IMG/VR virus record: IMGVR_UViG_3300043418_000114
Location: 186,001 to 250,000 of that record
Strand: one strand, 5' to 3'
Length of the DNA stretch: 64,000 bases
In this document: one piece after another, positions 48,573 to 64,000 of the stretch
Numbering within the stretch: the first letter of the stretch is position 1
Layout: each line of letters opens with the position of its first letter
Notes under the pieces: model-generated
The model's input: the letters and a program-made list of their open reading frames with translations, nothing else
What the model was told of the DNA's origin: nothing
The model's database searches: none
Position numbers and translations under genes: made by a program

Positions 48573-48577
48573 ATATT

Positions 48578-48676: not shown

Positions 48677-48683
48677 ATTATCT

Positions 48684-48775: not shown

Positions 48776-48776
48776 T

Positions 48777-49781
48777 TTATTTTTTGACGCCACGGGATGG
48801 ATTGAGCAATTCATGTAGATGCTCAATATATCGGTGGACTTCTTGATACACTAATTTTAGGTATCGTCTACGAACCTGCACTTCTTGTGGGTTGCGCGGT
48901 TCGGCGAATCTATTGCTGATTCTATTGTTTATGTAAGAAATGATATCTTCACTTTCAATGCGAGGAATATCTTGTAGTCTTTCAACTTTATCTAAGCCAT
49001 TTGCTTTAATAACGTCTAATGCCATTTGATGTGCAAATGCGGCAATTTCTTGTGGACTAGCATAATACAAGTCGTAGTAACGATCTTTGTTCTTAGACTT
49101 TACAGCCTTTTGTGCGGCGCTGTAGAACTCACCCTTAGTTTTATCTAAGTAGCTACGATATTCAGTCTTGCCTAGTGGTCTATGTGCCTGTTGCTTGTGT
49201 TGAACTAAGTGTACTGCCTCGTGAACTACAATTGATACAATCTTGTCGATTGCACTGTCCATGTCTTTCAAAAGTACATTAAGAATTTCTCTGTCATTAG
49301 ATTTCAACATCTTGAACAAGAAACTCATGCCCTTTGTTCTATCGCCTGCCTCATAATTGTCATACAAATAAATGCTAAAACGATTCATGATTGTACGAGC
49401 AATTGCTGGCAAGTAAGCACGATTAATAACCATGTTAGAACCCTGTGCGTAACCGCCCATGCCCTTCATGGTACCAAATCTGAACTTAGATATTGCGTCT
49501 TTACCAAGGATCTTTTCCAAGGTAAGTTTCATTTGTTTGGTAATACCTTTTTCAATCTTTTCATTACCTTCACGTTGCATGAACTCACGTACATAACGAT
49601 CACTTAGGTTATCGTCGTTTAAGATTTCTTGCAAGTTTGGATTGTTCATGAATGACTTTTCCAATGCAGACACGCCATTAATAATGCCGTCTTTAACAGC
49701 CCTTGACAAGTCTTCTTCATACTTGGTCATACTTATGGCTTCATCGACCACTTCTTCATTAACAAATTCAAATATACGCAT
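48777..49781 (-). CDS. Hypothetical protein with HExxH motif
   Basis: HEAVH..Q...Y.ASPQEIAAFA; ATAAATA upstream. Confidence 0.65.
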   Translation of the reverse strand: MRIFEFVNEEVVDEAISMTKYEEDLSRAVKDGIINGVSALEKSFMNNPNLQEILNDDNLSDRYVREFMQREGNEKIEKGITKQMKLTLEKILGKDAISKFRFGTMKGMGGYAQGSNMVINRAYLPAIARTIMNRFSIYLYDNYEAGDRTKGMSFLFKMLKSNDREILNVLLKDMDSAIDKIVSIVVHEAVHLVQHKQQAHRPLGKTEYRSYLDKTKGEFYSAAQKAVKSKNKDRYYDLYYASPQEIAAFAHQMALDVIKANGLDKVERLQDIPRIESEDIISYINNRISNRFAEPRNPQEVQVRRRYLKLVYQEVHRYIEHLHELLNPSRGVKK

Positions 49782-49802
49782 AGTACATATATTTATCTTA
49801 TT

Positions 49803-49880
49803 TGGTGTGTCCTGTTGGAATCGAACCAACTTCTCCGATTTTTCAGACCGGCGCTGAATGACCACACTAGCTCAGGACAC
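49803..49880 (-). tRNA. tRNA-Phe(GAA), second copy
   Basis: Loop CTGAAAA; CCA. Confidence 0.85.
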
Positions 49881-49881
49881 A

Positions 49882-50244
49882 TTAAATTGTTTTATATCTT
49901 TTATCTTTTTGCTTGTGTTCTACGTCCCACTTGATTGCGGCGCCAGAACAAAACTTTTCATCTTTCCAGAATCTTGCTCCATTCAATATGAATGGCTTCA
50001 ATACTCTATCACCGTTCCACCAACCACGTTGGCATTTAATGAAGCCTTTTGCTTCTAATTCGTTTCGTAGTTCTTTGAACTCTGGATGATCATCATGTGA
50101 CAATGACTTACATCGATCCTCGCCCTTGATAATCTTAATCAATTGATCTGGTGTTAGTTCGTTTACTGGAATGTGATCATACATTCCCCACTCTTTTTCA
50201 ATCTTAACATCACATAATGAATTCATGTCGATTTCAAACTTCAT
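49882..50244 (-). CDS. Hypothetical protein
   Basis: GGAGG SD before MKFEID. Confidence 0.6.
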   Translation of the reverse strand: MKFEIDMNSLCDVKIEKEWGMYDHIPVNELTPDQLIKIIKGEDRCKSLSHDDHPEFKELRNELEAKGFIKCQRGWWNGDRVLKPFILNGARFWKDEKFCSGAAIKWDVEHKQKDKRYKTI

Positions 50245-50410
50245 GCTTCCTCCATTGTAGGTTTTTGAGCGCCCAACTATCTTTCTCAAGGACTCACTGG
50301 ATTGTCTCGTATGAAGGAGTTTAGCAACCTTGTACTGCTACTGGCGTGTCAGTCACAAGAATAGGGACCTAGCGCACAAGGGACTCTACTTCTACGTCTA
50401 TCTCAAAAAT

Positions 50411-50464
50411 TGGTGGTAGGCTTTCCTGGCACATGTAACCAGTAAGGCCCGGGCGCCGCCTACC
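50411..50464 (-). ncRNA. 54-nt T-armless mini-tRNA-like RNA
   Basis: GGTAGGC/GCCTACC-A-CCA acceptor; two small hairpins. Confidence 0.55.
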
Positions 50465-50474
50465 ATAACTCGAA

Positions 50475-50557
50475 TGTGTGTTGTAGGATTCGAACCTACA
50501 TCAGGAGGTTTTTAGGCCTCTTGTAATGATGCCCTAAACATTTATACGAAACACACA
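50475..50557 (-). pseudogene. Degenerate tRNA-like element
   Basis: T arm GTAGG-TTCGAAT-CCTAC; 8-nt loop CCTAAAAA; no CCA. Confidence 0.5.
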
Positions 50558-50561
50558 AAAC

Positions 50562-50819
50562 TGGCTTCGTTAGCAAGACTCGAACTTGCGATAGTGGCTT
50601 CAAATCGCGTATGCTGGGTGCCACCGTGTTTCCCAAAGTTACCCTCGTATCCCCTCTGCTAGTTTATCTCACTTTTCTCACATTTCGACCTGTTCCGCAC
50701 TTCCCGGACTCACAGTGTTTGGTTTTAAAGCCTACGCGATTGTTATCTACTTTGTTTTACTAGTTGCCTTATTAATAGCATACTCAATACTACTCTACCT
50801 TCCTCTACACTATAACGAA
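50562..50819 (-). ncRNA. About 258-nt RNA with tRNA acceptor, T arm and a large internal domain
   Basis: TTCGTTA/TAACGAA-G-CCA; T arm GCAAG-TTCGAGT-CTTGC; internal AATCGCGTA/TACGCGATT. Confidence 0.6.
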
Positions 50820-50826
50820 ATAAAAT

Positions 50827-50902
50827 TGGCACCGTAGACGGGAATCGAACCCGCCGCGTCTTCATAGACAGTGAAGTATCACCCCTAGGTGAACTCTACG
50901 GT
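50827..50902 (-). tRNA. tRNA-Asp(GTC), unusual U37
   Basis: Loop CTGTCTA; G73; CCA. Confidence 0.8.
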
Positions 50903-50907
50903 ATAAA

Positions 50908-51447
50908 TCATTTTACAACATCTTGCCAACGAATGACTAGTGATTTGTCGTAATTTTGAGTTTTGTTCTTTCTGCGATTTTCCAATGCAGGAAGATACTG
51001 AAAGTTATCAGGATGATGTAGACCTCCGCATGCCAATGGCACAATATGGTCGACTTCGTATCCAGTTGGACAACTCTCGTAAATTTTTCGAATTAACTGA
51101 CTATCAACGTAATCAGGTGTTGCGTTGTACTTTCTCGCTCTATAGTTTTGTACATTCAACACATTTAATTTTGCAGATTCGTCTTTCGTTTTTCTTCCAA
51201 CTTTATCCCAATAAGCTATTCTAGCCTCTGATATTTTGGCAGAATGTTCTGCTGTTCTCGGCTTAAGTTTCTTTCCTTTGGTACTGGTTTGCTTAATTGA
51301 ACCAGAAGCAATTCCTTCTTTAACCGAGTTGGCTATTTTTCGTTTCGTTTCATCGGATCTAACTCTAGAGTTAGCACACGGTCTACAACAATACTTTCCT
51401 GATCCATATGATCCATCATGTTCACTATTACATTTGAGGCAAAACAT
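50908..51447 (-). CDS. HNH homing-endonuclease-like protein
   Basis: N-terminal Cys motifs; NUMOD-like basic helices; 'EVDHIVPL..GGLH...N.QYL...ENRRK'. Confidence 0.82.
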   Translation of the reverse strand: MFCLKCNSEHDGSYGSGKYCCRPCANSRVRSDETKRKIANSVKEGIASGSIKQTSTKGKKLKPRTAEHSAKISEARIAYWDKVGRKTKDESAKLNVLNVQNYRARKYNATPDYVDSQLIRKIYESCPTGYEVDHIVPLACGGLHHPDNFQYLPALENRRKNKTQNYDKSLVIRWQDVVK

Positions 51448-51496
51448 ATTAAATTCCTTTAATATATTTATCGAACCTCGCTCATTCTTTAGTTTT

Positions 51497-51572
51497 TGGC
51501 TCCCCAGGATGGGATCGAACCACCGACATCCTGATTAACAGTCAGGCGCAACTACCGCTGTGCTACTGGGGA
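51497..51572 (-). tRNA. tRNA-Asn(GTT), second copy
   Basis: Loop CTGTTAA; CCA. Confidence 0.92.
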
Positions 51573-51580
51573 ATAATTCT

Positions 51581-51655
51581 TGGTGCCTCCACCTGGGCTC
51601 GAACCAGGGACTCCCACCTTATCAAGATGATACTCTACCACTGAGTTATAGAGGC
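51581..51655 (-). tRNA. tRNA-Ile(GAT)
   Basis: Loop TTGATAA; CCA. Confidence 0.88.
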
Positions 51656-51665
51656 AATTAATTGT

Positions 51666-51739
51666 TGGTACCCAGTGCAAGAATTGAACTTGCGTCTATC
51701 GATTATCAGTCGATTGCTCTTCCGTTGAGCTAACCGGGC
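51666..51739 (-). tRNA. tRNA-Ile(GAT), second copy
   Basis: Loop CTGATAA; CCA. Confidence 0.88.
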
Positions 51740-51745
51740 ATTGTT

Positions 51746-51821
51746 TGGTAGATGTGAGTGGATTCGAACCACCGACCTGCTCCGTATGAAGGAGATGCAC
51801 TAGCCGCTGTGCTACACATCC
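51746..51821 (-). tRNA. tRNA-Met(CAT)
   Basis: Loop TTCATAC; CCA. Confidence 0.85.
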
Positions 51822-51827
51822 ATTGTA

Positions 51828-51902
51828 TGGTGCTCCTTGACAGAATCGAACTGCCACCCCTAGATTACAAAACTAGTCCACTACCATTATGATTAAAAGA
51901 GC
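51828..51902 (-). tRNA. tRNA-Thr(TGT), second copy
   Basis: Loop TTTGTAA; CCA. Confidence 0.85.
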
Positions 51903-51908
51903 AAATAA

Positions 51909-52022
51909 AACAGGATACATTCTTGACGAATGCTCTACCAATTGAGCTAATCTCGCATGAAGCGAAATGTTGGAATCGAACCAACGACACATCGTTTGAT
52001 GTAGTTTGCTGTATGTATCCTA
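51909..52022 (-). ncRNA. CAGCA-scaffold RNA copy 6, with a permuted T-acceptor-D tRNA mimic
   Basis: TAGGATAC-ATA-CAGCA, tetraloop hairpin, GTTGG-TTCGATT-CCAAC, closed acceptor, TAGCTCAATTGGTAGAGC, GTATCCTG. Confidence 0.85.
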
Positions 52023-52026
52023 AAAT

Positions 52027-52146
52027 TGGCGCCGCCGGAGGGATTCGAACCCCCATCTCTTCCTTGACATGGAATTTTTATATGCTGAACGTACTCTGTA
52101 CAGAGTCACTTTTTATAAGTGTCCTGATCCATTAGACGACAGCGGC
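52027..52146 (-). tRNA. tRNA-Asp(GTC)-like gene with a permuted CAGCA scaffold inserted between the D and anticodon arms
   Basis: GCCGCTG/CGGCGGC-G-CCA; insert ...ACTCTGT-AC-AGAGTAC-GTT-CAGCA-TATAAAAA; TTCC-ATGTCAA-GGAA. Confidence 0.75.
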
Positions 52147-52153
52147 GATAAAT

Positions 52154-52227
52154 TGGTGCGGGGTAAGGGAGTTGAACCCTTGACTAAACGTTGGCAACGT
52201 TTGATTTTACCGTTAAACTAACCACGC
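52154..52227 (-). tRNA. tRNA-Gly(GCC), second copy (A73)
   Basis: Loop TTGCCAA; CCA. Confidence 0.82.
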
Positions 52228-52235
52228 ATAAAAAC

Positions 52236-52312
52236 TGGAATACGGAGTGAGATTTGAACTCACGAATAACTGGTTTGCAATCAGTCCCCTTAGGCCGCTC
52301 GGGCATCCGTAC
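52236..52312 (-). tRNA. tRNA-Cys(GCA), second copy
   Basis: Loop TTGCAAA; U73; CCA. Confidence 0.85.
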
Positions 52313-52322
52313 ATAAATTGAT

Positions 52323-52398
<76 letters not shown>

Positions 52399-52409
52399 AA
52401 ATTCACTTA

Positions 52410-52486
52410 GGGGTGACCGGTGGGACTTGAACCCACAAAAACCTGAGTCACAGTCAGGGTCGTCTACCAATTCCGACACGGCCACA
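52410..52486 (-). tRNA. tRNA-His(GTG), no encoded CCA, extended flanking stem
   Basis: Loop CTGTGAC; C73; flanks TTTACTTAGG/CCTAAGTGAA pair. Confidence 0.8.
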
Positions 52487-52510
52487 CCTAAGTAAACTTA
52501 GGAGAAATAA

Positions 52511-52571
52511 AACAGGATGCGTTTTTGCTTTTTACCAATAAAAGTTTTTTTAATTGCTGAATGCATCCTAA
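52511..52571 (-). ncRNA. CAGCA-scaffold RNA copy 7
   Basis: TAGGATGC-ATT-CAGCA...CTTTT-ATTGGTA-AAAAG...GCATCCTG. Confidence 0.8.
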
Positions 52572-52575
52572 AAAC

Positions 52576-52601
52576 AAAAAACCCTGAGAGGATCAGGGTT
52601 T
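52576..52601 (-). terminator. Intrinsic terminator
   Basis: AAACCCTGA-TCCTC-TCAGGGTTT followed by T-run. Confidence 0.7.
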
Positions 52602-52621
52602 GTAATGTGTTGCAAGTATGT

Positions 52622-53275
52622 TTACTTTTTAGGATAAACATACAGTTTTTGCAAGTCTGGTCTTTCAGGTTCTAACCACTCGCCTTTCTTGCACATAGCA
52701 ATGATGCTTTTTGGGCATCCTGCTAACTCTAATTGTGTATAAGAACTAAGTCCTCTACCTTGAATTTTAGGTTGCATATGACATGGCTGAGGAACTTCTC
52801 TCCAATAACCGGTGCCATTGTCTACACCTGATGCAATGTAGTTAGTGTATTCTGCTTTGATACCAGGACGAAAATAAATTGTCAAGCCACGATCAGGTGT
52901 TTCATACACTCTAGGACCATCAACAAATATTTCTGCCATGTCTAAGCATGTCATTACAGCAGTAGGTCGCTGTAGATGATCTAACCTTGTGCCATCAGGG
53001 CATGCACCGTTGTCTAACTCAGTTTTATCGCCGTTAGGCAACTCCATGAACTCGCCATGCTGAGTTTTGAATTCACCGAACAAGTCTTGGTAATTCTCAC
53101 TGATCCAGTATTTCTCGCGTGTCCAATCTTCATCCCTATCGATGGTAGTAGTCACACCTTTAAACACTTTAATATAGCCACTATCGCCGCCATCAAGTGC
53201 TTCATAAGATAATTCTTTATTGACTGTTAATGTCAATTTCTTTGTATTGTAATCATAAATCCATGGTAAAATCAT
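52622..53275 (-). CDS. Hypothetical protein
   Basis: 217 aa; ATAAATA and GGAG upstream. Confidence 0.65.
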   Translation of the reverse strand: MILPWIYDYNTKKLTLTVNKELSYEALDGGDSGYIKVFKGVTTTIDRDEDWTREKYWISENYQDLFGEFKTQHGEFMELPNGDKTELDNGACPDGTRLDHLQRPTAVMTCLDMAEIFVDGPRVYETPDRGLTIYFRPGIKAEYTNYIASGVDNGTGYWREVPQPCHMQPKIQGRGLSSYTQLELAGCPKSIIAMCKKGEWLEPERPDLQKLYVYPKK

Positions 53276-53315
53276 AGTTCGTCTCCGATACTAGTATTTA
53301 TAGATTAATGAATAA

Positions 53316-53392
53316 TGGCGCCACCGAAGAGATTCGAACTCCTGACTCCTTCGTTCGTAGCGAAGTACTCTAATCCACTGAGTTACGGCGGC
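53316..53392 (-). tRNA. tRNA-Arg(ACG)
   Basis: Loop CTACGAA; CCA. Confidence 0.9.
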
Positions 53393-53399
53393 ATAATAT

Positions 53400-53501
53400 A
53401 ACAGGATAGTTGTTTTGCAGGGGGAATTGAACCCCCAAGGTTTGATTAGAAGTCAAATTGTGAACCGTTCACATGCGTATTGTTTGCTGTAACTATCCTA
53501 A
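53400..53501 (-). ncRNA. CAGCA-scaffold RNA copy 8, enclosing D-like, Arg(TCT) anticodon and T arms
   Basis: TAGGATAG-TTA-CAGCA...TTTGA-CTTCTAA-TCAAA, GGGGG-TTCAATT-CCCCC...CTATCCTG. Confidence 0.85.
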
Positions 53502-53504
53502 AAC

Positions 53505-53579
53505 TGGCATCCTGTACGGGAATCGAACCCGTCTTTATGACTTGAAAGGCCATCGTTCTTACCGATAAACTAACAGGAT
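53505..53579 (-). tRNA. tRNA-Glu(TTC), second copy
   Basis: Loop CTTTCAA; G73; CCA. Confidence 0.88.
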
Positions 53580-53689
53580 ATTAATTCGTTCCCGTGCTAC
53601 GACTTTTACGCAACGACCGTAGTGCCCGATCTCGCAAGTTGCTCCGGACGGGAGTAGAGCAACGTTGTCTTCTTTCTGGCCAGAAATAC

Positions 53690-53765
53690 TGGCACCCCGT
53701 GATGGACTCGAACCACCGCATGTCGGAATCAAAATCCGATGCCTTACCAACTTGGCGAACAGGGT
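53690..53765 (-). tRNA. tRNA-Gln(TTG)
   Basis: Loop TTTTGAT; CCA. Confidence 0.9.
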
Positions 53766-53771
53766 ATAATT

Positions 53772-53846
53772 TGGTGGAAGCCGAGGGAGTTGAACCCTTC
53801 TAGACAGCGATCTTGCAAGGATCACCCGTAGCCCGCTACTGCCCCC
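53772..53846 (-). tRNA. Atypical tRNA-Ala(TGC)
   Basis: G3:U70; loop CTTGCAA; short D arm; CCA. Confidence 0.7.
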
Positions 53847-53853
53847 AATTGTA

Positions 53854-53931
53854 TGGCGTCCACCGTCGGTATCACACCGCACTCCAAGTCAGCTGGTAAG
53901 TGCTGACCTACGTATCTCACGTTGAGTGGAC
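53854..53931 (-). ncRNA. Aberrant cloverleaf RNA ending in CCA
   Basis: GTCCACT/GGTGGAC-G-CCA; 8-bp central arm with 8-nt loop; non-canonical T loop. Confidence 0.5.
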
Positions 53932-54050
53932 TGTCTTATACTTCCATCGTTGCCACCACAGCATTGACTACTCATATAAGCACTAACTTGAATAGACGCT
54001 ACCGGGCATTAATATCCGCCCGTATCACAGTTAGTTGGTCTACATAAACT

Positions 54051-54137
54051 TGGTGGAACCCTAAGGAATCGAACCTCTTGCCACCACCCACCTTATTATG
54101 GCTACGATTTTACAGACCGCAAGCGGGAAAGGGCTCC
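54051..54137 (-). tRNA. D-armless tRNA-Tyr(GTA)-like RNA
   Basis: GGAGCCC/GGGTTCC-A-CCA; loop CTGTAAA; T arm; D arm replaced by TTTCCCGCTT. Confidence 0.65.
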
Positions 54138-54148
54138 ATTAAATTGTT

Positions 54149-54222
54149 TGGTCTGGGTGGCAAGAATCGAACTTGCTCCTCGAGTATCCAAGACTCGCCG
54201 ACTTCCATTATCCTACACCCAG
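54149..54222 (-). tRNA. tRNA-Pro(TGG), second copy (A37)
   Basis: Loop CTTGGAT; CCA. Confidence 0.82.
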
Positions 54223-54238
54223 ATTGATAAATACTATT

Positions 54239-54802
54239 ATGAATACACAAAAACTACGCCAACTAATGAATCTATGCGAGGGTCGTAACCCTGATCTAGA
54301 ATATCAAGACGCAGAAGATAAAGTCATTGCTAGACTTCAAAGTTATAAGAGTCAATCTTATACTAAACTTGCTCAAAAAGTCAACCGCATCAAAGAATTA
54401 AAAGATGAGGTCAAGGCCTTAGAGGAAGAAGTCAAACAAGAAACTCGTGAAAACATCAATGATTTGTTTGATGCCGAAGATGCTGTAAAAACACGCATCG
54501 TTGAAACTATGAGTTTTATTCTTACTCTAAGCAAGAATCCAAAAGCTACAGAAACTCCTAAGTACAAGGACATTCTGAATGAACTTACTAATCACTTGAC
54601 TCCAGAGTTGATTAACGTCCTAGAAGGTCTTAAGAAACAAATGGTTACTGTTACTCAGAAAGAACCATCATTGAAAATTGAACCACTTAAGGAAGGTTTC
54701 TTAGGCTCATACTTTGCACGTTTGAAAAACGCTGTTATGAGTTGGGGTCAACGTTATGACCAGAAACTCGATAACTTAAAGCGTTTAGCTTACTCAAAAT
54801 AA
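54239..54802 (+). CDS. Hypothetical coiled-coil protein
   Basis: ATAAATA immediately upstream; 187 aa. Confidence 0.65.
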   Translation: MNTQKLRQLMNLCEGRNPDLEYQDAEDKVIARLQSYKSQSYTKLAQKVNRIKELKDEVKALEEEVKQETRENINDLFDAEDAVKTRIVETMSFILTLSKNPKATETPKYKDILNELTNHLTPELINVLEGLKKQMVTVTQKEPSLKIEPLKEGFLGSYFARLKNAVMSWGQRYDQKLDNLKRLAYSK

Positions 54803-54804
54803 GT

Positions 54805-54882
54805 TGGCAGAGGTAACTGGATTCGAACCAGTGTTCACGATTTCAAAGACCGTAGCTTTAGGCCAGACTAAGCTATACCCCA
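54805..54882 (-). tRNA. tRNA-Gln(TTG), second copy
   Basis: U1; loop CTTTGAA; G73; CCA. Confidence 0.85.
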
Positions 54883-55648: not shown

Positions 55649-55775
55649 AGTATAACTTGTTTTCGATTAGTTGTCAACAACTTTTTTCGTTAACTTGTCC
55701 AAAACTTCAAAATTCTTTTTTGCTCGATTTCTCAAGCAATGTGTGTAGTATATATCTGTTTTGAGTTGTTGTCAA
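55649..55775 (-). promoter_or_regulatory. Tandem sigma70 promoters heading the tRNA array
   Basis: TTGACA-N17-TATACT at 55747-55775 and 55649-55677. Confidence 0.7.
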
Positions 55776-55791: not shown

Positions 55792-56820
55792 TCACAACAA
55801 CCATCGTTGATTCTTCATTGTCCACTCTACAACATCACGAAGTTTATCTTGAAATGTGTACTTTGGTTTCCAACCCAACGATGCCAGATACTCTCCTGAC
55901 AAACTGTAGCGAAAATCATGACCAGGTCGTTGACTATCATTTCCAGTGATTTGATATTGTAGCGTCTTGTTCATCACTGTAGCAATCATTTTGGCAACTG
56001 CTAGATTACTAAATTCCTCATTTGCTGTGATGTTGAATTTAGGACAGGTGATGCCTTCTGTGTTGGATGGCAATGAAAACTGCTTGTGTGGCAGATTCAT
56101 AATGAACAATGTGGCTAGAGCCACGTCTTCTACATAGATCCAATGACGTAGTCCACTCACTGTGCCAGTACTATCGCCATGAATTGTAACAACTTCATCG
56201 TTCGATAACTTATTCATCACTAAACCAATGAACTTTTCTGGATTCTGTCTCTCGCCGAACGTGTTCATAACGTGTAGGCAGTATATTGGCATGCCATACG
56301 TATTCTCATATGCTACGCACAGTTCTTCTGCCGCGGCCTTACTTGCACTATATGGACTACGACTGTTATATCTGTCGTATTCGTTGAAATTTACACCAGC
56401 TGGAGCACTTCCAAAAATCTCATCCGTCCCAAAATAGATGAACTTTTCTAGATTAGGAAGATGATGCCTTGCATATTCCAATAGGTTACATGTGCCTACC
56501 ACGTTGTCTTGAATGAATTGAACTGGATTTTGTATGCTTCTGTCAACGTGACTACCCGCGGCTAGGTGAATAATATAGTCAACGTTGCCTAGTTGTTTGG
56601 CTAGCTGAGGATTAATTTCTGCACGAAGATCATGGTAGATTACTCTAAGATTATGATTTACTGGATCTAACTCATCGCGTATTTCGACTAATCTATTCAG
56701 ATTGCCAGAAAAATCCAGTCTATCCAGACTAGTCACCTGGTAGCCTCTCGACAATAGTTGTTTTATTAGATGATGACCAATGAATCCTGCTCCACCTGTC
56801 ACTAGTACATTTTTACCCAT
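55792..56820 (-). CDS. NDP-sugar 4,6-dehydratase (RmlB/RfbB-like)
   Basis: GGAGFIG, HLAAGSHVDRSI, TDE, YSASK, RPGHD.RY. Confidence 0.9.
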   Translation of the reverse strand: MGKNVLVTGGAGFIGHHLIKQLLSRGYQVTSLDRLDFSGNLNRLVEIRDELDPVNHNLRVIYHDLRAEINPQLAKQLGNVDYIIHLAAGSHVDRSIQNPVQFIQDNVVGTCNLLEYARHHLPNLEKFIYFGTDEIFGSAPAGVNFNEYDRYNSRSPYSASKAAAEELCVAYENTYGMPIYCLHVMNTFGERQNPEKFIGLVMNKLSNDEVVTIHGDSTGTVSGLRHWIYVEDVALATLFIMNLPHKQFSLPSNTEGITCPKFNITANEEFSNLAVAKMIATVMNKTLQYQITGNDSQRPGHDFRYSLSGEYLASLGWKPKYTFQDKLRDVVEWTMKNQRWLL

Positions 56821-56861
56821 CCAGTATTTATAGACAAGGTTCCTTCAGAATAAATATCAAC

Positions 56862-57764
56862 ATGGACATACTGACTATTACATGCGACCGCGACTTCGAT
56901 ATCATGGAGTCTCACGCCAAAAGCATTCAACGTTTTTTGGCACCATGTAAGCATTGGGTTTTCGTAAATCAGTCAAAACGCTCACGCCAAGACTGGATGG
57001 AAATGCTAGAGCCATATTACACAAGGCATGAACTAGAAATTGTCTTCACCGATGACATAGAATCATTTGGTGACTTGAATGGTTGGATCGTTCAACAGAT
57101 ATGGAAGATACGTGCAGTAGATTGGATCAAAAAGGATTACGTTGTTTTTGATTCTAAAAACATATTTGTGCGTGACACTGACGTTGGCACATGGACTCAT
57201 GAAGGACCTGGTGTGTTTGGATACTTACCCGACACTGAGCAGAAGCCAGATGATCCTGACTTTGATTTAACTATCAACTACATTCTGTCTGCCAGAGATT
57301 GCTATGTAAAGTACTATAATTTACCAGCAATTAAAAAGACTATGAACATTATCACGCCATTCGTAGTGCGTGAAAAAGTAATGTCTGAGTTGTCAGCTAT
57401 GATCAAAAAGAATAACGTGTTTGTAGACGTACCAATCGACGACAAGGTTATATGGCATGGTGACTTTTTGCTATACAGTATGGTAGCAGAAAAATATGGA
57501 CTACTAGACACTGAACCTGACTTCCATCTTCCAGGCGATGTTACTAGTAAATCTGTATTCTATCATCATTCAGAATGGGAACAAGATGCATACAAGAGTG
57601 GGTTTGATAGATTACGCAACAATGAAAACTATGCGTGTTTGAGTCTACATCATACCTGGTTAGCGAATGCTTCAATGAATGAGCGTGTGGAAATGGCAGA
57701 GTTCTTAGAGCAATTGGATGTGCTACCAGAACGATTAAAAAAACAAATATTGAGAATAAAATGA
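56862..57764 (+). CDS. Glycosyltransferase-like protein (DUF6492-like)
   Basis: 'GW..QQ.WK...Y.V.DSKN.F'. Confidence 0.55.
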   Translation: MDILTITCDRDFDIMESHAKSIQRFLAPCKHWVFVNQSKRSRQDWMEMLEPYYTRHELEIVFTDDIESFGDLNGWIVQQIWKIRAVDWIKKDYVVFDSKNIFVRDTDVGTWTHEGPGVFGYLPDTEQKPDDPDFDLTINYILSARDCYVKYYNLPAIKKTMNIITPFVVREKVMSELSAMIKKNNVFVDVPIDDKVIWHGDFLLYSMVAEKYGLLDTEPDFHLPGDVTSKSVFYHHSEWEQDAYKSGFDRLRNNENYACLSLHHTWLANASMNERVEMAEFLEQLDVLPERLKKQILRIK

Positions 57765-58537
57765 GACATGAACAAACTAAATTAGACAATCATATTCTTT
57801 TTGCAATTCAGTTACTGAGTTATGCCTCCATTCCATTGATGTTCATGTATGCTACTATTGGACAATGGATTATTGCCAGTATCATGTGTTTCTTGTTATA
57901 TCACGTTGGTGTTGCAGTTACATTCCATCGTTTGTTAACTCATAATTCGTTCAGCACAGGTCCAATCACTAAAGTGGTGATGACAATCTTAGGCACATTA
58001 GCTACTAATGGCAGTTCATTGTACTGGGTTGCACTGCACACAACACATCACAAGTATTCAGATAGTGATAAAGACGTTCACAGTCCACGCTTTGGCTTCT
58101 GGAAGACTTGGTTCATGCCTATGTATCCACATAGCCCAGTTGACTCTACTAAGCTAGCTATCCGTTTAGCTAAAGAGCCATTGCAATTGTTCTTACACAA
58201 GTACTATTGGTTCGTTATTGCCGCATATGTTCTAATGTTGTATGTCATTAGTCCATTCGCTATCGTATATGCTTACTTGTTCCCTGTAATGTTCTCATGG
58301 GCAATGTCAGCAGGCATCGTCAACACACTATGCCATGTTCGTGGATATCGCAATCACGAGACTAAAGACAATTCAACAAACATTCGTTGGTTCTCTTGGA
58401 TCACAAACGGTGAAAGCTATCATAACAATCATCACGCTAGACCAAGCAGTGCTAATTTTGGTAGCGATACCGAGTACGACCCAGGCTACTCGTTTATCAA
58501 GTTGTTAGCAAAGTTGAAACTGGCAACCTTAAAATGA
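57761..58537 (+). CDS. Delta-9-type membrane fatty acid desaturase
   Basis: His boxes HRLLTH, HTTHH and HNNHH; TM segments. Confidence 0.92.
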   Translation: MRHEQTKLDNHILFAIQLLSYASIPLMFMYATIGQWIIASIMCFLLYHVGVAVTFHRLLTHNSFSTGPITKVVMTILGTLATNGSSLYWVALHTTHHKYSDSDKDVHSPRFGFWKTWFMPMYPHSPVDSTKLAIRLAKEPLQLFLHKYYWFVIAAYVLMLYVISPFAIVYAYLFPVMFSWAMSAGIVNTLCHVRGYRNHETKDNSTNIRWFSWITNGESYHNNHHARPSSANFGSDTEYDPGYSFIKLLAKLKLATLK

Positions 58538-58851
58538 TAATTGGCAAACCTAAAGGCAAAGACCACTATACTTGTTCCTTGAGTGATAAGTATTATGAGA
58601 ATCAATGTAAGAATCCACCAGATTATTACAGTTTGTTTGACTTCCATCAAGTGCCAGATAGCTATACCTTCGTTCCTGACATAAAGAACTATGATAAATT
58701 AGAGAAAGTATGTTATCTATTTCATCACAGGCTAGTTCAGTATTATATTGATCACAATTTAGATCCTGATACCCCGTGGTGGTGGTATGATGACAAAGAG
58801 TTACATGCATTAGCAGATAGGCTAGCACAAAGAATAAAGGACACACTATGA
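58534..58851 (+). CDS. Hypothetical protein
   Basis: Coupled ORF in operon. Confidence 0.55.
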   Translation: MIIGKPKGKDHYTCSLSDKYYENQCKNPPDYYSLFDFHQVPDSYTFVPDIKNYDKLEKVCYLFHHRLVQYYIDHNLDPDTPWWWYDDKELHALADRLAQRIKDTL

Positions 58852-59672
58852 GTACTAAACGAATTTCACACAAAAACACGCCAATGGTCATGCGTATTCC
58901 ATTGCCAGCATCACTAGCACAATTGCAAAAAGAAACACTAGATTTGATTGCTAAACCAAAAGAAGAACGCCGTAGAGTTGACAATGATTCAACATTCGCC
59001 GCACTTGACGCAGGCGAAGAAGGCAAGTACTCAGTCTATTCGAATGATGGCATCGATATGCAAGGCACGACTGGTGAAAAGTTTGAGTACAACGTTGCAT
59101 CGTTCTTTGAAATGAATGACAAAGCCAAGCAATGGGTAGCTGACAATGGCGGCCATCGTCGTGTTATCAGTCCACTAAATCGCTATCGTGGCTACATGAA
59201 TCCTTGGGTCAGTGAGTACTGGGATCCAGGACTAGACGAGCGTGTGTTTGACAAGCCAACTGAGTTGAACGTTGGTATCTTTAAAGAACTAAACGATTGG
59301 TTCAGTAACAAAGGCTATAGTGTTCGTCGTAGTGCTTTAGTCAGAGTTATGCCGCACCAATTCTTGAGTCCCCACGTTGACACTGGTCCTGATTTTATCG
59401 TTCGATTCCAAATCCCAGTTATTCACAATGACAAAGCGGTAATGGGTTTCAGAAAGTCTAAGACTGATCCATGGACAGTATTCAACTTCGAACCAGGTTA
59501 CATCTATGCTGTTAACTCAGGACTAGAACATTTTGCACGTAACGATGGCGACGATGACCGAGTTCAATTCCGTATCTGTGTTGAAGAATACAATGTATTA
59601 GAAGAACTAGGTTTCGAAGAATGGAATCAAGCCATGACTTGGGAAGATTGGGAAACACCCAAGTATGACTGA
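58848..59672 (+). CDS. 2OG-Fe(II) oxygenase (Asp/Asn beta-hydroxylase-like)
   Basis: 'PHVD...RFQIP...N.GLEH.A.N.G..DR'. Confidence 0.7.
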   Translation: MSTKRISHKNTPMVMRIPLPASLAQLQKETLDLIAKPKEERRRVDNDSTFAALDAGEEGKYSVYSNDGIDMQGTTGEKFEYNVASFFEMNDKAKQWVADNGGHRRVISPLNRYRGYMNPWVSEYWDPGLDERVFDKPTELNVGIFKELNDWFSNKGYSVRRSALVRVMPHQFLSPHVDTGPDFIVRFQIPVIHNDKAVMGFRKSKTDPWTVFNFEPGYIYAVNSGLEHFARNDGDDDRVQFRICVEEYNVLEELGFEEWNQAMTWEDWETPKYD

Positions 59673-60303
59673 TTGCTATCAAAGTCATGGTAGCGTTGAC
59701 GAACAAATTGTACTTGAGTTGCACAAATATCTAGACAGTATTTTTCCTCAAGAGATTCGTAATAGTTATCCATTGTCTGAGAATGTGTATTACACATTCC
59801 ACATGAAATACTTGTTTGACAAAAGCGTACCATTGGACATGGACGCATTGTCGTGGTATGGCGATGGTGAACGCACAGTTGACTTGATATATGATATGCA
59901 TCCCTTGAAGATTTACAAGGTCATTGAATCAGTTAGACGAGGGGTAATTGATATCATCGCTGTGGTAGATGATGCGCCTGGTAATGAGACCTTCAAAGAA
60001 TTCATCGGGGCCATGGAAGAAAAAATGGGTCGCAAAGTCCTGAAGGTTGCATTCAGTGTGTGTGGCGAAGGCCATAGAATTAAAATACACAAAGACTTTT
60101 CTGTTAAATACGACAACAAACTTCACTTAGTTATTAAGAACGGTGGAGTTAGTTCGCTTGTATGGTACGACGACAATTTCAAAGAACTTGCTAGATGTAA
60201 TGGGCAAAGTGGTGAATTGTTCTATTTTGAGGGTGACAAATACTTTCACCGTTTTGATAGACCAAAGAGCGAACGCATACATCTAATTATGTGCTTTGAA
60301 TGA
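59665..60303 (+). CDS. Putative 2OG-Fe(II) oxygenase
   Basis: 'IHKD...LHL...FH...RIHLI'. Confidence 0.55.
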   Translation: MTDCYQSHGSVDEQIVLELHKYLDSIFPQEIRNSYPLSENVYYTFHMKYLFDKSVPLDMDALSWYGDGERTVDLIYDMHPLKIYKVIESVRRGVIDIIAVVDDAPGNETFKEFIGAMEEKMGRKVLKVAFSVCGEGHRIKIHKDFSVKYDNKLHLVIKNGGVSSLVWYDDNFKELARCNGQSGELFYFEGDKYFHRFDRPKSERIHLIMCFE

Positions 60304-61718
60304 AACAGGTTGACTTTCTAATAATTGGCGCAGGCCTTGCTGGAATTGGTGCGGCAGTTCACTTCCAAAAACAATACCCAAACAAAACTTTTGCTATCGT
60401 AGAGAAACGTGGTAGTATTGGTGGCACATGGGATGTGTTCAAGTACCCAGGTGTTCGTTCAGATAGCGACATGTTTACACTGGGTTACAGTTTCAAACCG
60501 TGGACTGGTAGTTACTATGCCACAGGACAAGAGATTAACAACTACATCAAAGAAACTGCCCAAGAATACAACATTACACAACACATCCATTTCAACACTA
60601 CAGCTAGTGGCTTAGAATGGCAAGACAATCAATGGACTCTATATACTAACAACGATATGTTCGTTGCCAAATTCGTATTGTTTGCTACCGGTTACATCAA
60701 CCACGAACGTTCACACTTCCCATTCATCAAGAACCACAATAGTTTTAAAGGCAAAATCATTCATACTCAGTACTGGGATAGTGACATAGACTATACAGAC
60801 AAGAAAATAGTCGTGATTGGCAGTGGGGCTACTGCATACACATTAGTGCCAGAACTTGCAAAGACAGCAAAACACGTGACTATGATACAGCGTAGTCCTA
60901 GCTATGTACGCAGTGAAGAACGTAACCCTGAATGGTTAAAAGACATTCGTAAAGAACTATCAGACCCACAAGAGATTCATGACAAGGTTAGATTGTACAG
61001 CACTCATATACAGCACAATCAATTTCACAATAGCAGACAAAGACCTGAAGTAATGAAACGGTTGCTTATTAACGATGTTAAGAAACAACTGGATCCAACT
61101 GTTGATATTAAACACTTCACTCCAAACTACATGCCATGGGACCAGCGTATCTGCAAGATTATTGACAATGATTTCATTCAGACTGTCAATAGTGGCACAG
61201 TTTCAATCGAGACTGACACGATTGAATCGTTTACGGTGAACACCGTTGTATTATCATCTGGCAAAGAAGTTGAAGCTGACATTATTGTTATGGCAACTGG
61301 ATTCAAGACTCGCATGATGGGAGATATCTCTATCAAAGTCGATGACGTTGACAAAGATTATACCAAACTAAAAGCATACAAAGGAACAATGATTGAAGAC
61401 TTGCCTAACTTAGGCTATATATTTGGGTATGCCAGCATGTCATGGACGTTGAAGTTAGAACTAGCACTGTCATTCTATTCACGTGTATTTGATTACATGG
61501 ATAAAAACAACTATTCAGTGTTTGTACCATTTGATGAAAACACAGTTGAGTCTGGCACAGGCTTTATTGATTTGAGTGCAAACTTCTATACACGCAGTGA
61601 AGATAAATTCCCTAGACAAGGTGTTGAGTTACCTTGGCAAAACACAAACAATATCGTAGTCGATAAGACTATGTTATTAGAAGACCCAATAGATGATGGA
61701 GTATTGAAATTCAAATGA
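60300..61718 (+). CDS. Flavin monooxygenase (Baeyer-Villiger/EthA-like)
   Basis: GAGLAG, GGTWD.FKYPG.RSD, FKGKIIHTQYW, GSGATA, ATG. Confidence 0.92.
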   Translation: MKQVDFLIIGAGLAGIGAAVHFQKQYPNKTFAIVEKRGSIGGTWDVFKYPGVRSDSDMFTLGYSFKPWTGSYYATGQEINNYIKETAQEYNITQHIHFNTTASGLEWQDNQWTLYTNNDMFVAKFVLFATGYINHERSHFPFIKNHNSFKGKIIHTQYWDSDIDYTDKKIVVIGSGATAYTLVPELAKTAKHVTMIQRSPSYVRSEERNPEWLKDIRKELSDPQEIHDKVRLYSTHIQHNQFHNSRQRPEVMKRLLINDVKKQLDPTVDIKHFTPNYMPWDQRICKIIDNDFIQTVNSGTVSIETDTIESFTVNTVVLSSGKEVEADIIVMATGFKTRMMGDISIKVDDVDKDYTKLKAYKGTMIEDLPNLGYIFGYASMSWTLKLELALSFYSRVFDYMDKNNYSVFVPFDENTVESGTGFIDLSANFYTRSEDKFPRQGVELPWQNTNNIVVDKTMLLEDPIDDGVLKFK

Positions 61719-62362
61719 GAGCTTGGACTAAATTCGAACACGGTAATGAAGTACACGAACACATGCTAGATGAGTTTTTAAAGACTCCTGGCATGCCTGA
61801 ACACATGTCAAGTAGAGAAGGCATTAAGATTGCAAAGTTCCAAGAGCATCCTGCTAGTGAGTTCTATATGCTAGTTGTTAGTGGCAAGATGGTAGGATGC
61901 TGTGGCTTCTATGTGTTGCATGATGACAATGGCATATTGTACTGCAAGAGCCCATATCGTTTATACATTTTACCTGAAGGCAATGGTGCATACACTGCTA
62001 ATCGTACCAGTTGGGAAAACATCAGTAGAGATTGGCTAAGTCGTTGGCCTGATATTCCATTCTTGGCAACAGTAAATGTAGGCAATGAAAAGATATTGTA
62101 TTATGAGATTCTTGGCATGCAACGATATACTGACAGATTGCCACTAGATGATCCATTCAGACAAAATCAAAAGTCATTCTACTTGCATCCCAAATTAGTC
62201 AAAGAAATGTACACGTGGCAATATGCATGGTATACCACTAACTATGTTGGATTTCAACGTGAAGAAATGGACATGGATGTTGAAGTCAAGAAACAAATTG
62301 AAGACTACTGGGCTAAAGGATATTGGCTTGGCAAGGGCAACACTGACAGGACAACAGTATGA
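61715..62362 (+). CDS. Hypothetical protein (possibly GNAT-like)
   Basis: Coupled ORF; 'G.MVGC.G...RLYILPE'. Confidence 0.45.
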   Translation: MRAWTKFEHGNEVHEHMLDEFLKTPGMPEHMSSREGIKIAKFQEHPASEFYMLVVSGKMVGCCGFYVLHDDNGILYCKSPYRLYILPEGNGAYTANRTSWENISRDWLSRWPDIPFLATVNVGNEKILYYEILGMQRYTDRLPLDDPFRQNQKSFYLHPKLVKEMYTWQYAWYTTNYVGFQREEMDMDVEVKKQIEDYWAKGYWLGKGNTDRTTV

Positions 62363-63561
62363 CAGACATAGCCATTATTGGAGTAGGTATTGTTGACAGT
62401 TTAGGTTTCAACAAAGACGAATGCTGGAACAACATGCTCAACGGTGTTGTTGGACTAAGCCCTAATGTTCTATTCAATAGAGAACAATATCCTATATCAA
62501 AAATCAATAGTGTTCATAGCGTAGACTTGAACAAGATAACACTTGCCGAGTTCACTGACAAAGAAAGACAGAATATGGATCGCATCTTTTTGCTTTCCAT
62601 GCATTCAATATTAGACTGTATCAAAGACAGTAATGTTACATCCACTGATGTTTCAATGATTGTAGGCATGACTAGTTCTATGAAGAATTTAGAACTAGAA
62701 TCTTGGAACAGATTACTCAATAATAAACGCACTGCGCCTAGACAAATGTACTTTGCAATGCGTGATACTATCACATCGACAATCACTCGAATGTTTGGGT
62801 ATACGGGTGCAACAAGTACCATGAGTAACATGTGTACTACATCTATAAGTTCGTTAGATTATGCTGTGCGTTTGTTAAACGACAACGACTGTGCATATTC
62901 ATTAGTCACTGGAGTAGATTCGTTCGTACACCCTCTTGACATGTATGTTATGCAATCAATGGGTGCAACATGCATTGACGAAAATCCATTAACCAAACCA
63001 TTTGACGAGAATCGTAATGGTATCACATTAGGTGAAGGCAGTTGTTCATTCATGCTAACCACCTTAGCTAATGCTAAAAATAACAATCATAAAATCTATG
63101 GCATTATTAAGGGAATAGGTCACGGTACTGAATCTGTGCATGAAACTGACATGAGTACAGATGGTATTGGTTCACGCAATGCTATCAACATGGCACTAAG
63201 AAAAGCAAACTTGTCCAGTGCCGATATTGGATACGTTAATTGTCATGCAACAGGAACACCTCAAGGAGATACTGTCGAATATGATATTGTCAGTAGCATG
63301 TTCCCAAACGTAACAGTAGGTGCAAACAAATCAAATATCGGACACACCATGGGTGCGTGTGGTATGCTTGAGTTGTTCTACACGATCATGGCGTTGAATC
63401 GTCAGGTAGCACCACCTATCGCTAATTTAATTACCCCTATAGGTCATTCAATAAATATCCCAATGACCATGCAAACAATTGACACTATGTATGCCCTAAA
63501 GAATTCTTTTGGCTTTGGTGGCAAAAGTAGTTGCGTTGTCATTGAACGGGGAACATTATGA
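62359..63561 (+). CDS. Beta-ketoacyl-ACP synthase (FabF/FabB-like)
   Basis: Active-site Cys 'NMCTT', KPFDE.R.G..LGEG, HATGT..GD, KSNIGHT.GA, NSFGFGG. Confidence 0.9.
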   Translation: MTDIAIIGVGIVDSLGFNKDECWNNMLNGVVGLSPNVLFNREQYPISKINSVHSVDLNKITLAEFTDKERQNMDRIFLLSMHSILDCIKDSNVTSTDVSMIVGMTSSMKNLELESWNRLLNNKRTAPRQMYFAMRDTITSTITRMFGYTGATSTMSNMCTTSISSLDYAVRLLNDNDCAYSLVTGVDSFVHPLDMYVMQSMGATCIDENPLTKPFDENRNGITLGEGSCSFMLTTLANAKNNNHKIYGIIKGIGHGTESVHETDMSTDGIGSRNAINMALRKANLSSADIGYVNCHATGTPQGDTVEYDIVSSMFPNVTVGANKSNIGHTMGACGMLELFYTIMALNRQVAPPIANLITPIGHSINIPMTMQTIDTMYALKNSFGFGGKSSCVVIERGTL

Positions 63562-64000
63562 AGTTAGCAATGGTTTCAGCACATACAGTTGACTTTTACC
63601 ATTTTTTCAAAATTCAATATGCAATGATGCAGATGTATGACCCATTGGTTAAAATCACTGTAGCAAAGAGTGATACATTCGAGCAGTTCAATGAGAAGGT
63701 TGATTGGGTAGATTTAGGATATCCTGATTTCTTGCATCCAATGCATCGTAACTATACAACCAAATTCAACTTTGCACGTGCTCCGTTGGCACAATCAGTA
63801 GATGCAGACCGAGTAGCATGGGTAGATGCAGATATATTGCCTCTAGTTCCAACCGCTATTAGCAACTTCATGACTGTAAGTGACAAGCCCACAGTAGCAC
63901 ACAATGTATACATGAGCGATGAACAATATGATGGGTGGAATAGTCTTACTGAATGGTATGGAGTTGGTAAGTTACCATGTTATAATTGCGGATTGGTTGC
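63558..64000 (+). CDS. GT-A glycosyltransferase-like protein (3' truncated by window)
   Basis: 'K......VAWVDAD' DxD motif and 'YNCG'. Confidence 0.55.
   Translation, partial: MKLAMVSAHTVDFYHFFKIQYAMMQMYDPLVKITVAKSDTFEQFNEKVDWVDLGYPDFLHPMHRNYTTKFNFARAPLAQSVDADRVAWVDADILPLVPTAISNFMTVSDKPTVAHNVYMSDEQYDGWNSLTEWYGVGKLPCYNCGLV

Follow-up and report, generated by a model that had tools for sequence, protein, structure and literature searches.

A conserved twelve-gene operon of fatty-acyl, oxygenase and sugar-type enzymes in a freshwater jumbo myovirus

Gene content and conservation of the locus

The DNA analysed here, referred to as the window, is a stretch of 64,000 nucleotides corresponding to bases 186001-250000 of the 364,247-bp virus record IMGVR_UViG_3300043418_000114, and its right end carries the subject of this study, an operon of twelve plus-strand genes (g1 to g12) that encodes fatty-acyl, oxidative and sugar-type enzymes. 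The operon begins at window position 56862 and, as a sequence-only reading of the window had anticipated, runs past the window end: the first 7.1 kb (56862-64000) lie inside, and the remainder of g9 together with g10 to g12 was found in the flanking sequence L002 (genome 241001-261000; L002 position equals window position minus 55000), which takes the operon to the window-equivalent position 66562, 2.56 kb beyond the end. The same reading had described the genes as tightly coupled and divergent from an NDP-sugar dehydratase gene. Both descriptions hold, as the operon genes overlap by 4 or 8 nt at every junction (11/11) and the dehydratase gene g0 (55792-56820, minus strand) faces g1 across a spacer of only 41 bp (56821-56861). 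Its placing of the open reading frames (ORFs) agrees with the ORF list of the window, and the functions that it named all found support, namely a protein of the GT-A glycosyltransferase fold, a desaturase, two Fe(II)/2-oxoglutarate (2OG) oxygenases (these below family thresholds), a Baeyer-Villiger monooxygenase (BVMO), a FabF-like ketosynthase (KS) and a second GT-A protein. Its gene list was nevertheless incomplete, with the GNAT-fold protein g7 and the 105-residue protein g3 omitted.

Two or three related metagenomic lineages also carry the operon. L004, a 30-kb contig, and L008 have all 12 genes in unchanged order, with per-gene identities of 47-97%, of which the lowest belong to g1 (47-55% in the two contigs) and the highest, taken gene by gene, to g4 (94-95%). 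The KS protein of L004 (P0007) has also been reported on a contig of 361,147 bp. Flanking phage genes are held in common too, among them those for an S-adenosylmethionine (SAM) synthetase, a cell-wall hydrolase, a rubrerythrin and a ribonucleotide reductase (RNR). A rubredoxin/rubrerythrin pair follows the operon both here and in L008, and AhpC/AhpD-like genes take this place in L004. Since the overlapping junctions and the kept gene order are hard to explain otherwise, a functional link among the twelve genes is likely.

Fatty-acyl genes

The 400-residue product of g8 (62359-63561) matches PF00109 ketoacyl-synt with 88.3 bits and PF02801 Ketoacyl-synt_C with 97.7 bits (cut-off 20.8 for both), and it aligns over its full length with Bacillus subtilis FabF (4ls5, 2e-44), with the Cys, His, Lys, His and GFGG positions kept. 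C159, H296, K324 and H329 do not vary among 26 clade members. Because its score against the TIGR03150 fabF model (222 bits) is below the equivalog cut-off of 494, we filed g8 as FabF-like and not as FabF. It is an elongating beta-ketoacyl synthase whose Cys-His-Lys-His site is intact. FabF-like genes in phage-database records are about 25% identical to g8 by tblastn, several of these records looking like host DNA, and g8 is the only KS of the genome. Two genes downstream, the 254-residue product of g10 (window-equivalent 64330-65094) is a classical short-chain dehydrogenase/reductase (SDR) of FabG-like type, as seen from adh_short_C2 (3e-49), a FabG-like PHROG (6e-35) and a YxxxK motif.

The protein of 258 residues encoded by g2 (57761-58537) is a membrane di-iron desaturase of the stearoyl-CoA desaturase (SCD) type. 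It matches Pfam FA_desaturase (PF00487) at 4.4e-17 and 63.1 bits against a cut-off of 29.7, and the DesA family model NF049918 at 6.5e-30 and 104 bits, under the cut-off of 400. When g2 is aligned to SCD1 (4ymk, 4.4e-11), its HRLLTH, HTTHH and HNNHH motifs fall on the three His boxes, and the protein has three hydrophobic segments. A gene for a rubredoxin of 42 residues (CxxCG...CPxCG), below the length limit of default ORF lists, lies on the minus strand at 66555-66683 (L002 11555-11683; genome 252555-252683), where it runs head-on into g12 and shares the final 8 nt of that gene, and a rubrerythrin gene (66685-67137, match 6.7e-18) adjoins it on the same strand.

The sequence-only reading had proposed to inspect the downstream sequence for an acyl carrier protein (ACP) or an acyltransferase. 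An ACP is found neither downstream nor elsewhere, as no PF00550 match was obtained in the 364-kb genome at E <= 1, a search in which control genomes did match. The candidate acyltransferase, the GNAT-fold protein g7, lies within the operon itself. Of the remaining enzymes of fatty-acid synthesis, dehydratase, enoyl reductase and malonyl transferase were observed neither in the operon nor in its flanks.

Oxygenases and small proteins

Three consecutive genes of the operon encode oxygenases. The first of them, g4 (58848-59672, 274 aa), is an AspH/LpxO-like Fe(II)/2OG hydroxylase of the cupin fold, even though its match to Pfam Asp_Arg_Hydrox (PF05118) is sub-threshold (E 0.02, 15.2 bits vs a cut-off of 22.6). 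A profile of the g4 family matches the beta-hydroxylase 7v4f (4e-4) and the proline cis-4-hydroxylase 4p7w (6e-4) in the PDB, and H176-x-D178...H228 together with R238, which align to the motif residues of these two structures, are invariant in 7 homologs down to 29% identity. Homologs of g4 score higher against PF05118, with 24.2 bits for a 174-aa protein of L032, a related locus described below, and 32.8 bits for a 178-aa protein encoded elsewhere in the present genome. AspH-like enzymes are known to act on lipids as well, as in the case of LpxO and OlsC. A search of 5.8 billion proteins returned just 3 clusters for g4, and an exhaustive search of 1.8 billion proteins gave 7 representatives for the family of g7; with so few members, deep alignments could not be built for either protein. 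Single-sequence PDB searches with g4, g11 and g12 gave nothing usable.

The product of g5 (59665-60303, 212 aa) is probably a second Fe/2OG oxygenase of the double-stranded beta-helix type, for which support is weaker than for g4. Its PF05118 match is sub-threshold too (E 0.15, 12.4 bits vs 22.6), its Atlas neighbours in features and structure are viral Asp_Arg_Hydrox and 2OG-FeII_Oxy_3 clusters (TM 0.58-0.81), and the HKD...H...R pattern is kept in three close orthologs. Profile comparison found g5 neither detectably related to g4 nor clearly related to a 212-aa protein of the locus L031. The third protein, g6 (60300-61718), is a flavin monooxygenase of the type I Baeyer-Villiger class, with Pfam matches to Pyr_redox_3 (8e-19) and FMO-like (6e-14) and with the BVMO PtlE as its best NCBIfam match. 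The PDB matches, which cover residues 2-225 only, are phenylacetone, cyclohexanone and steroid monooxygenases (1e-33 to 1e-27). The fingerprint FKGKIIHTQYWD (FxGxxxHxxxWD) stands between the dinucleotide-binding motifs GAGLAG and GSGATA, and at 472 aa the protein is shorter than the approximately 540 aa of characterised BVMOs.

No family match was obtained for g3 (58534-58851, 105 aa) in any library scanned. The protein is highly conserved over its full length, with 87-90% identity in L004 and L008, and a distant homolog precedes the g4 homolog of L032, such that g3 always stands directly before a g4-type hydroxylase.

For g7 (61715-62362, 215 aa), Pfam yielded Acetyltransf_1 at E 0.12 only. 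An AlphaFold2 (AF2) model of g7, with a predicted local distance difference test score (pLDDT) of 83, had as its top Foldseek matches in the PDB the acyl-CoA N-acyltransferase 1xeb, ElaA and SpeG (about 1e-5); VIA Z scores to GNATs reached at most 10.0, and the matches in BFVD were viral GNATs. These models point to g7 as a GNAT-fold acyl-CoA/ACP N-acyltransferase of a very small and apparently phage-restricted family. The last two genes of the operon were less easily placed. The 313-residue product of g11 (window-equivalent 65091-66032) is a PP-loop ATPase with an SGGMDS motif, matching QueC at 1.4e-3 over the PP-loop only and Asn-synthase weakly, and g12 (66029-66562, 177 aa), for which Methyltransf_25 was hit at E 0.04 only, may be a small Rossmann or methyltransferase-like protein, a weak assignment.

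Sugar-type genes

The divergent gene g0 encodes an extended SDR of 342 aa that carries GxxGxxG, TDE and YxxxK motifs and matches the Pfam families GDP_Man_Dehyd (5.6e-58) and Epimerase (2.5e-53). It is a predicted NDP-hexose 4,6-dehydratase, best described as dTDP-glucose 4,6-dehydratase-like, the best model being TIGR01181 for that enzyme with 242 bits, below the cut-off of 365. An ortholog with 78% identity occupies the same divergent position in L004.

The structure-based assignments in this study rest on shallow alignments of 8-9 sequences. The first operon gene, g1 (56862-57764, 300 aa), matches Pfam DUF6492 (6.9e-10). Its AF2 model (pLDDT 86) had CpsY, a Stealth protein, and glycogenin as top Foldseek matches (1e-7 to 1e-5), and the VIA Z scores were 14.9 for a GlcNAc-1-phosphotransferase, 14.8 for WbbM and about 13 for the GT8 enzymes LgtC and GlyE. 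Its invariant motif is FDSKN (D-S-K) and not the canonical DxD, and the best structural matches are Stealth hexose-1-phosphate transferases; the model thus suggests an enzyme that is glycosyl- or hexose-1-phosphate transferase-like. The second GT-A protein, the GT8-like g9 (63558-64337 in window-equivalent coordinates, cut by the window at 64000; 259 aa), carries a conserved DAD motif and has lipopolysaccharide (LPS) glycosyltransferase and GT8 clusters as its Atlas structure neighbours (TM 0.78-0.81).

A second cluster with sugar-type genes follows the thymidylate synthase gene at genome 11.7-19 kb (L039 3777-10895). It encodes an AspH-like cupin of 178 aa, an epimerase/reductase of 323 aa, a 115-aa protein with a Gp23 N-terminal match, a DegT aminotransferase of 362 aa, a radical SAM/SPASM enzyme of 404 aa and a methyltransferase of 229 aa. 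Given the DegT, epimerase/reductase and methyltransferase genes of this cluster, the phage may possess amino-sugar capacity.

Promoter motifs and transcription

Two copies of a late-like promoter motif were found in the 41-bp spacer, TATAAATA on the minus strand at 56825-56832 before g0 and AATAAATA on the plus strand at 56849-56856 before g1, the ATAAATA core of the latter covering 56850-56856. That ATAAATA precedes both divergent starts had been pointed out before, and we find the motifs to begin 11-12 nt upstream of the respective ATG, which leaves no space for a Shine-Dalgarno site. Genome-wide, ATAAATA is not enriched (65 + 27 copies vs about 70 expected per strand). Its placement is strongly positional, however: 43 of the 92 copies point toward a gene start no more than 40 nt downstream, against about 2 expected, as scored with 428 rough gene calls. 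These copies form two position classes, one starting at -25 to -29 with a GGA-type ribosome site after it, the other starting at -11 to -14 without room for such a site, and the placement of the second class suggests leaderless late mRNAs. Examples of GATAAATA or TATAAATA stand at genome 19596, 69556, 275974-276000 and 307907; the motif often precedes large genes, two of which have matches among virion-structural or tail-fibre PHROGs. Either GATAAATA or TATAAATA is also found at equal distance before the g1 orthologs of L004 and L008, despite the diverged spacers. In phage T4, late promoters have the sequence TATAAATA. On account of this analogy and of the genes that share the motif, we read g0 and the operon as putative late genes with very short leaders or none.

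A second promoter class, of sigma70 type (TTGACA-N16-18-TAYAMT with a long shared consensus), has 41 copies that are always oriented with the local genes and is absent from genome 242-364 kb, and for these reasons it probably represents the early promoters of the phage. The g0/g1 spacer contains no promoter of this class. Its last two copies, near-perfect TTGACA-17-TATACT at window 55649-55677 and 55747-55775 on the minus strand, lie just past the g0 stop and point into an array of tRNA genes.

Transcripts of the region may be represented in the RNA run X3, a freshwater metatranscriptome, in which eight contigs of 100% identity tile 56878-62162. These contigs span six of the seven junctions between genes there, namely g1/g2, g2/g3, g3/g4, g4/g5 and g6/g7, and by a narrower margin g5/g6, and depth is lower toward the g0 side.

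The phage and its genome

The operon belongs to a complete freshwater jumbo myovirus that is RaK2/Atu_ph07-like. The record has a terminal overlap of 127 bp, a G+C content of 41.0% and 46 tRNA genes, and it encodes a tail sheath protein, a T4-type PolB, an SbcC-like nuclease and a Clp-like ATPase. The PolB is 44-48% identical to those of Sinorhizobium phage Phosso, Agrobacterium phage Atu_ph07, Xanthomonas phage XaC1 and Klebsiella phage RaK2, and DNA of the phage was detected in freshwater metagenomes of about 14 studies.

Several further features of the genome were recorded in passing. An array of 45 tRNA genes on the minus strand (window 39695-54882, genome 225695-240882) lies directly upstream of the operon region; one of them has a four-base anticodon (ARAGORN, genome 227532-227606), and two, of 90 and 99 nt (genome 234483-234676), are longer than usual, possibly owing to introns. 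The lone tRNA gene outside the array, with the anticodon CTA that reads TAG, is found near the genome end at 363408-363482 on the plus strand, far from the main array. A few kb from the array, at window 28164-34722 on the minus strand (genome 214164-220722), homologs of genes of the related jumbo phage L009 encode a T4 Rnl1-type RNA ligase (88% identical), an AAA_33 kinase and a dual-specificity phosphatase-like protein. They share one early-promoter region and could be a set for RNA or tRNA repair. A single ORF of 6,067 codons occupies genome 311335-329538 on the plus strand, after three ORFs of 954-1,124 aa. In the region L040 (genome 335686-343164 and 348931-351722), five ORFs of 417-469 aa stand in a run, at least three of which match radical SAM proteins by tblastn. 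Behind them come a 753-aa ORF, which matches radical SAM less strongly, and a DegT-like stretch with a match in two parts that passes a TAA stop.

The wider ketosynthase clade

Homologs of the g8 KS form a graded series from 98% down to about 26% identity, and they lie on phage or phage-like contigs wherever the context is readable. While a single-protein scan of IMG/VR with the KS gave no match, an alignment-based scan identified 30 viral contigs with a member of the KS clade, of which 13 have at least two SCD-like desaturase genes beside the KS gene and one more has a single copy. Many metagenomic contigs also bear a clade member. The richest island seen, L041 (IMGVR_UViG_3300023179_000086, 1291-19522), surrounds the KS gene with at least eight paralogous SCD-like desaturase genes and also encodes a GNAT-like protein, a cupin, a Rieske oxygenase, two PP-loop proteins, a g12-like protein and a B12-type radical SAM enzyme. 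Two related jumbo phages, L009 and L006, have backbone genes in common with the present phage (RNR 90%, RNA ligase 88% identity) and differ in their islands: L009 has the KS alone at another site, and L006 has a B12-type radical SAM enzyme, three desaturases and a KS. In T4-like marine contigs the KS gene stands beside replication genes, and on one related contig a KS-desaturase cluster adjoins tail-fibre-like genes.

The gene triad g7-g3-g4 recurs in L031 and L032, the latter with an acyl-AMP-ligase-like enzyme instead of a KS, beside two desaturases, a PP-loop protein and radical SAM/SPASM enzymes. From this triad in L032 and the co-occurrence in L041, the lipid genes appear tied to the GNAT and hydroxylase genes. 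The two GT-A genes were added in the present lineage only, and the dehydratase gene is found in only part of the lineage. We conclude that the operon is one elaborate member of a class of modular phage islands for fatty-acyl tailoring that centre on a viral KS clade and SCD-like desaturases. Among 50,697 phage records, neither the operon (by megablast) nor the KS clade nor g4 was found at useful identity, and the combination of KS, reductase, desaturase, oxygenases, acyltransferase and sugar transferases occurs in no cultured phage.

Discussion

We propose that the operon encodes one integrated pathway, by which an oxidised acyl group would be assembled on host ACP and joined to a sugar-bearing acceptor in the envelope or virion, a tentative reading that we consider to fall somewhat short of probable. 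Late in infection, the KS would take host acyl-ACP and host malonyl-ACP and add one C2 unit, and the reductase g10 would convert the product to a 3-hydroxyacyl thioester. The desaturase, the hydroxylases and the BVMO would then oxidise the chain, with the rubredoxin encoded next door as a possible electron supply for the desaturase, and the GNAT-fold protein g7 would pass the acyl group on to an amine. The simplest candidate for the acceptor would be an amino-6-deoxy sugar, derived from the 4-keto-6-deoxyhexose of g0 via the distant DegT aminotransferase, and the GT-A enzymes g1 and g9 might place the sugar on an envelope or virion acceptor, so that the product would be an acylated glycoconjugate. 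Dependence on the host is assumed because the genome has only one KS and no PP-binding domain. In its broader form, that aquatic myoviruses carry undescribed modular islands for the synthesis and oxidation of fatty-acyl chains, centred on a virus-specific KS clade with SCD-like desaturases and working on host ACP, which are here fused to sugar transfer and make a late lipidated glycan for the virion or the host envelope, the proposal seems to us rather doubtful.

A number of observations weigh against the proposed pathway. No product was seen, and all chemistry beyond the domain assignments is inferred. The genome encodes neither an ACP nor a sugar nucleotidyltransferase, the DegT aminotransferase gene lies 230 kb from the operon, and there is no acyltransferase of a known lipid class, thioesterase, flippase or exporter. 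Attempts to place g7 as a LuxI, OlsB or sugar N-acyltransferase found no support, the matches being to generic GNATs only. The RNA support consists of assembled contigs from one library in which DNA carry-over is not excluded, and it documents presence in an RNA library, not proven co-transcription, while the late timing is based on the T4 analogy and on the genes that share the motif. In L008 the dehydratase gene is replaced by radical SAM genes, and the KS of other phages stands alone or with desaturases and without sugar genes; the lipid and glycan parts may therefore be separable modules.

The last point leads to the most serious contender, which we nonetheless hold to be somewhat unlikely, namely that the operon gathers separate auxiliary metabolic genes. 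FabF and Des adjust chain length and unsaturation in homeoviscous adaptation. By analogy, the KS, the ketoreductase and the desaturase would tune the bulk membrane fatty acids, the hydroxylases would act on lipid A in the manner of LpxO, and the GT-A enzymes and the dehydratase would alter LPS or O-antigen. This would agree with the KS standing alone in the T4-like phages L009, L010, L033 and L034 and accompanied only by desaturases in 13 of the 30 IMG/VR loci, with the LPS glycosyltransferases among the structural neighbours of g9, with the exchange of the L008 dehydratase gene for other genes, and with the fabF and stearoyl-CoA desaturase genes of freshwater pelagimyophages (PMC7029224). What it can hardly explain is the full set of overlapping junctions and an order of 12 genes that is kept while the genes themselves diverge to between 47 and 97% identity, and it offers no role in bulk membrane adaptation for the BVMO, the GNAT-fold protein and the PP-loop enzyme. 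Elsewhere, moreover, the g7-g3-g4 triad accompanies acyl-activating enzymes and desaturases.

Modification of a protein or peptide, for which the Skp1 and glycogenin pathways and lipidated ribosomally synthesised and post-translationally modified peptides offer precedents, is in our view unlikely. On this reading, residues of a virion or host protein, or of a small precursor like g3, would be the target of the AspH-like enzymes, to which the GT8-like proteins would add sugars and the GNAT-fold protein a KS-derived acyl group. The matches of g4 to the AspH family and to a proline hydroxylase fit such a scheme, as do the glycogenin, UGGT and Skp1 GalT among the structural neighbours of g1, the late-type promoter that the operon has in common with large genes (two of them matching virion or tail-fibre PHROGs), the radical SAM/SPASM enzymes of related islands and the related contig with tail-fibre-like genes next to the KS-desaturase cluster. 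Neither a precursor-like peptide nor a recognisable acceptor turned up, however; g3 is conserved throughout, unlike a typical leader-core peptide, and AspH-like enzymes such as LpxO and OlsC act on lipids. A collagen-type acceptor was also considered and dropped, as the genome contains no Gly-X-Y repeats. Still less probable, in our judgement, is a free small molecule that is released, for instance an oxidised fatty-acid signal, a toxin or an antibiotic. The KS, ketoreductase, BVMO, desaturase, PP-loop protein and possible methyltransferase do resemble small-molecule gene clusters, and relatives contain eight or more desaturase paralogs, an acyl-AMP ligase, a Rieske oxygenase and a rubredoxin, yet the present operon has a single desaturase and lacks a thioesterase, a carrier protein and an exporter. 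Its two glycosyltransferase-fold proteins and the sugar dehydratase point instead to a bound glycoconjugate, and late expression would leave a signal little time to act.

That the segment might be host DNA joined by misassembly was the doubt raised by the sequence-only reading itself, and this explanation, or that of a very recent capture from a host, is hardly credible. The enzyme families are typical of bacteria, but the independent assemblies L004 and L008 have this set of 12 genes flanked by the same phage genes, the composition is ordinary (G+C 39.6% in the operon vs 41.0% in the genome; tetranucleotide distance 27th of 37 windows), and the phage's own promoter motif stands upstream. In addition, the KS is about 25% identical to its nearest cellular-type FabF matches, and a graded series of phage homologs exists.

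In its parts the operon recalls FabF/FabG, SCD, LpxO/OlsC, GT8 and RmlB, although several curated family cut-offs are missed. With elongation by FabF/FabB and FabG it shares a two-domain, thiolase-fold KS in which Cys-His-Lys-His and GFGG are kept and a YxxxK SDR two genes downstream, whereas it differs in that g8 is about 25% identical and under the equivalog cut-off, that its KS clade resides on phage contigs and that the phage is without an ACP. LpxO, OlsB, OlsC and OlsE represent AspH-family hydroxylases, a GNAT-type N-acyltransferase that uses 3-hydroxyacyl-ACP and a His-box di-iron enzyme, classes that the operon also contains; nevertheless, no significant match to LpxO, OlsB or OlsC models was obtained, and glycosyltransferases, a KS and a BVMO are foreign to the tailoring of lipid A and ornithine lipids. 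Glycan clusters of viruses are known from mycobacteriophage virion glycosylation and from the deoxy-amino-sugar pathways of giant viruses, and here as there an NDP-hexose 4,6-dehydratase, an aminotransferase, a methyltransferase, an acyltransferase and GT-A enzymes are virus-encoded, but we know of no such cluster that includes a KS, a desaturase or a BVMO. Bacterial polyyne clusters combine acyl activation, several membrane desaturases and a rubredoxin. The relatives L032, L041 and L006 show features of these and other desaturase-rich clusters, and so in part does the present operon, which in contrast has one desaturase, a KS in place of an acyl-AMP ligase, and no ACP or thioesterase.

The nearest precedents within phages are auxiliary genes for lipid desaturation. 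The occurrence of fabF and stearoyl-CoA desaturase genes in freshwater pelagimyophages was noted in passing (PMC7029224), and viral desaturases were described as auxiliary genes from Arctic brines (PMC7300359). The present locus likewise combines an SCD-type desaturase with a FabF-like gene in an aquatic myovirus, but here they are part of a coupled 12-gene operon with a BVMO, two cupins, a GNAT-fold protein, two GT-A proteins and a PP-loop ATPase. Our literature search found no paper on such an operon or on DUF6492. Lipid genes of phages have thus far been reported as single auxiliary genes, mainly desaturases, and the finding here is a conserved operon of 12 genes that is apparently transcribed in nature. 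It also offers leads for enzyme discovery in the short BVMO, the new AspH-like hydroxylases and the tiny GNAT family. If the product is indeed a defined acylated glycoconjugate or an oxidised lipid, phages would carry out multi-step lipid chemistry by way of host ACP, which would bear on the membrane biology of the virocell, on receptor masking and on virion decoration.

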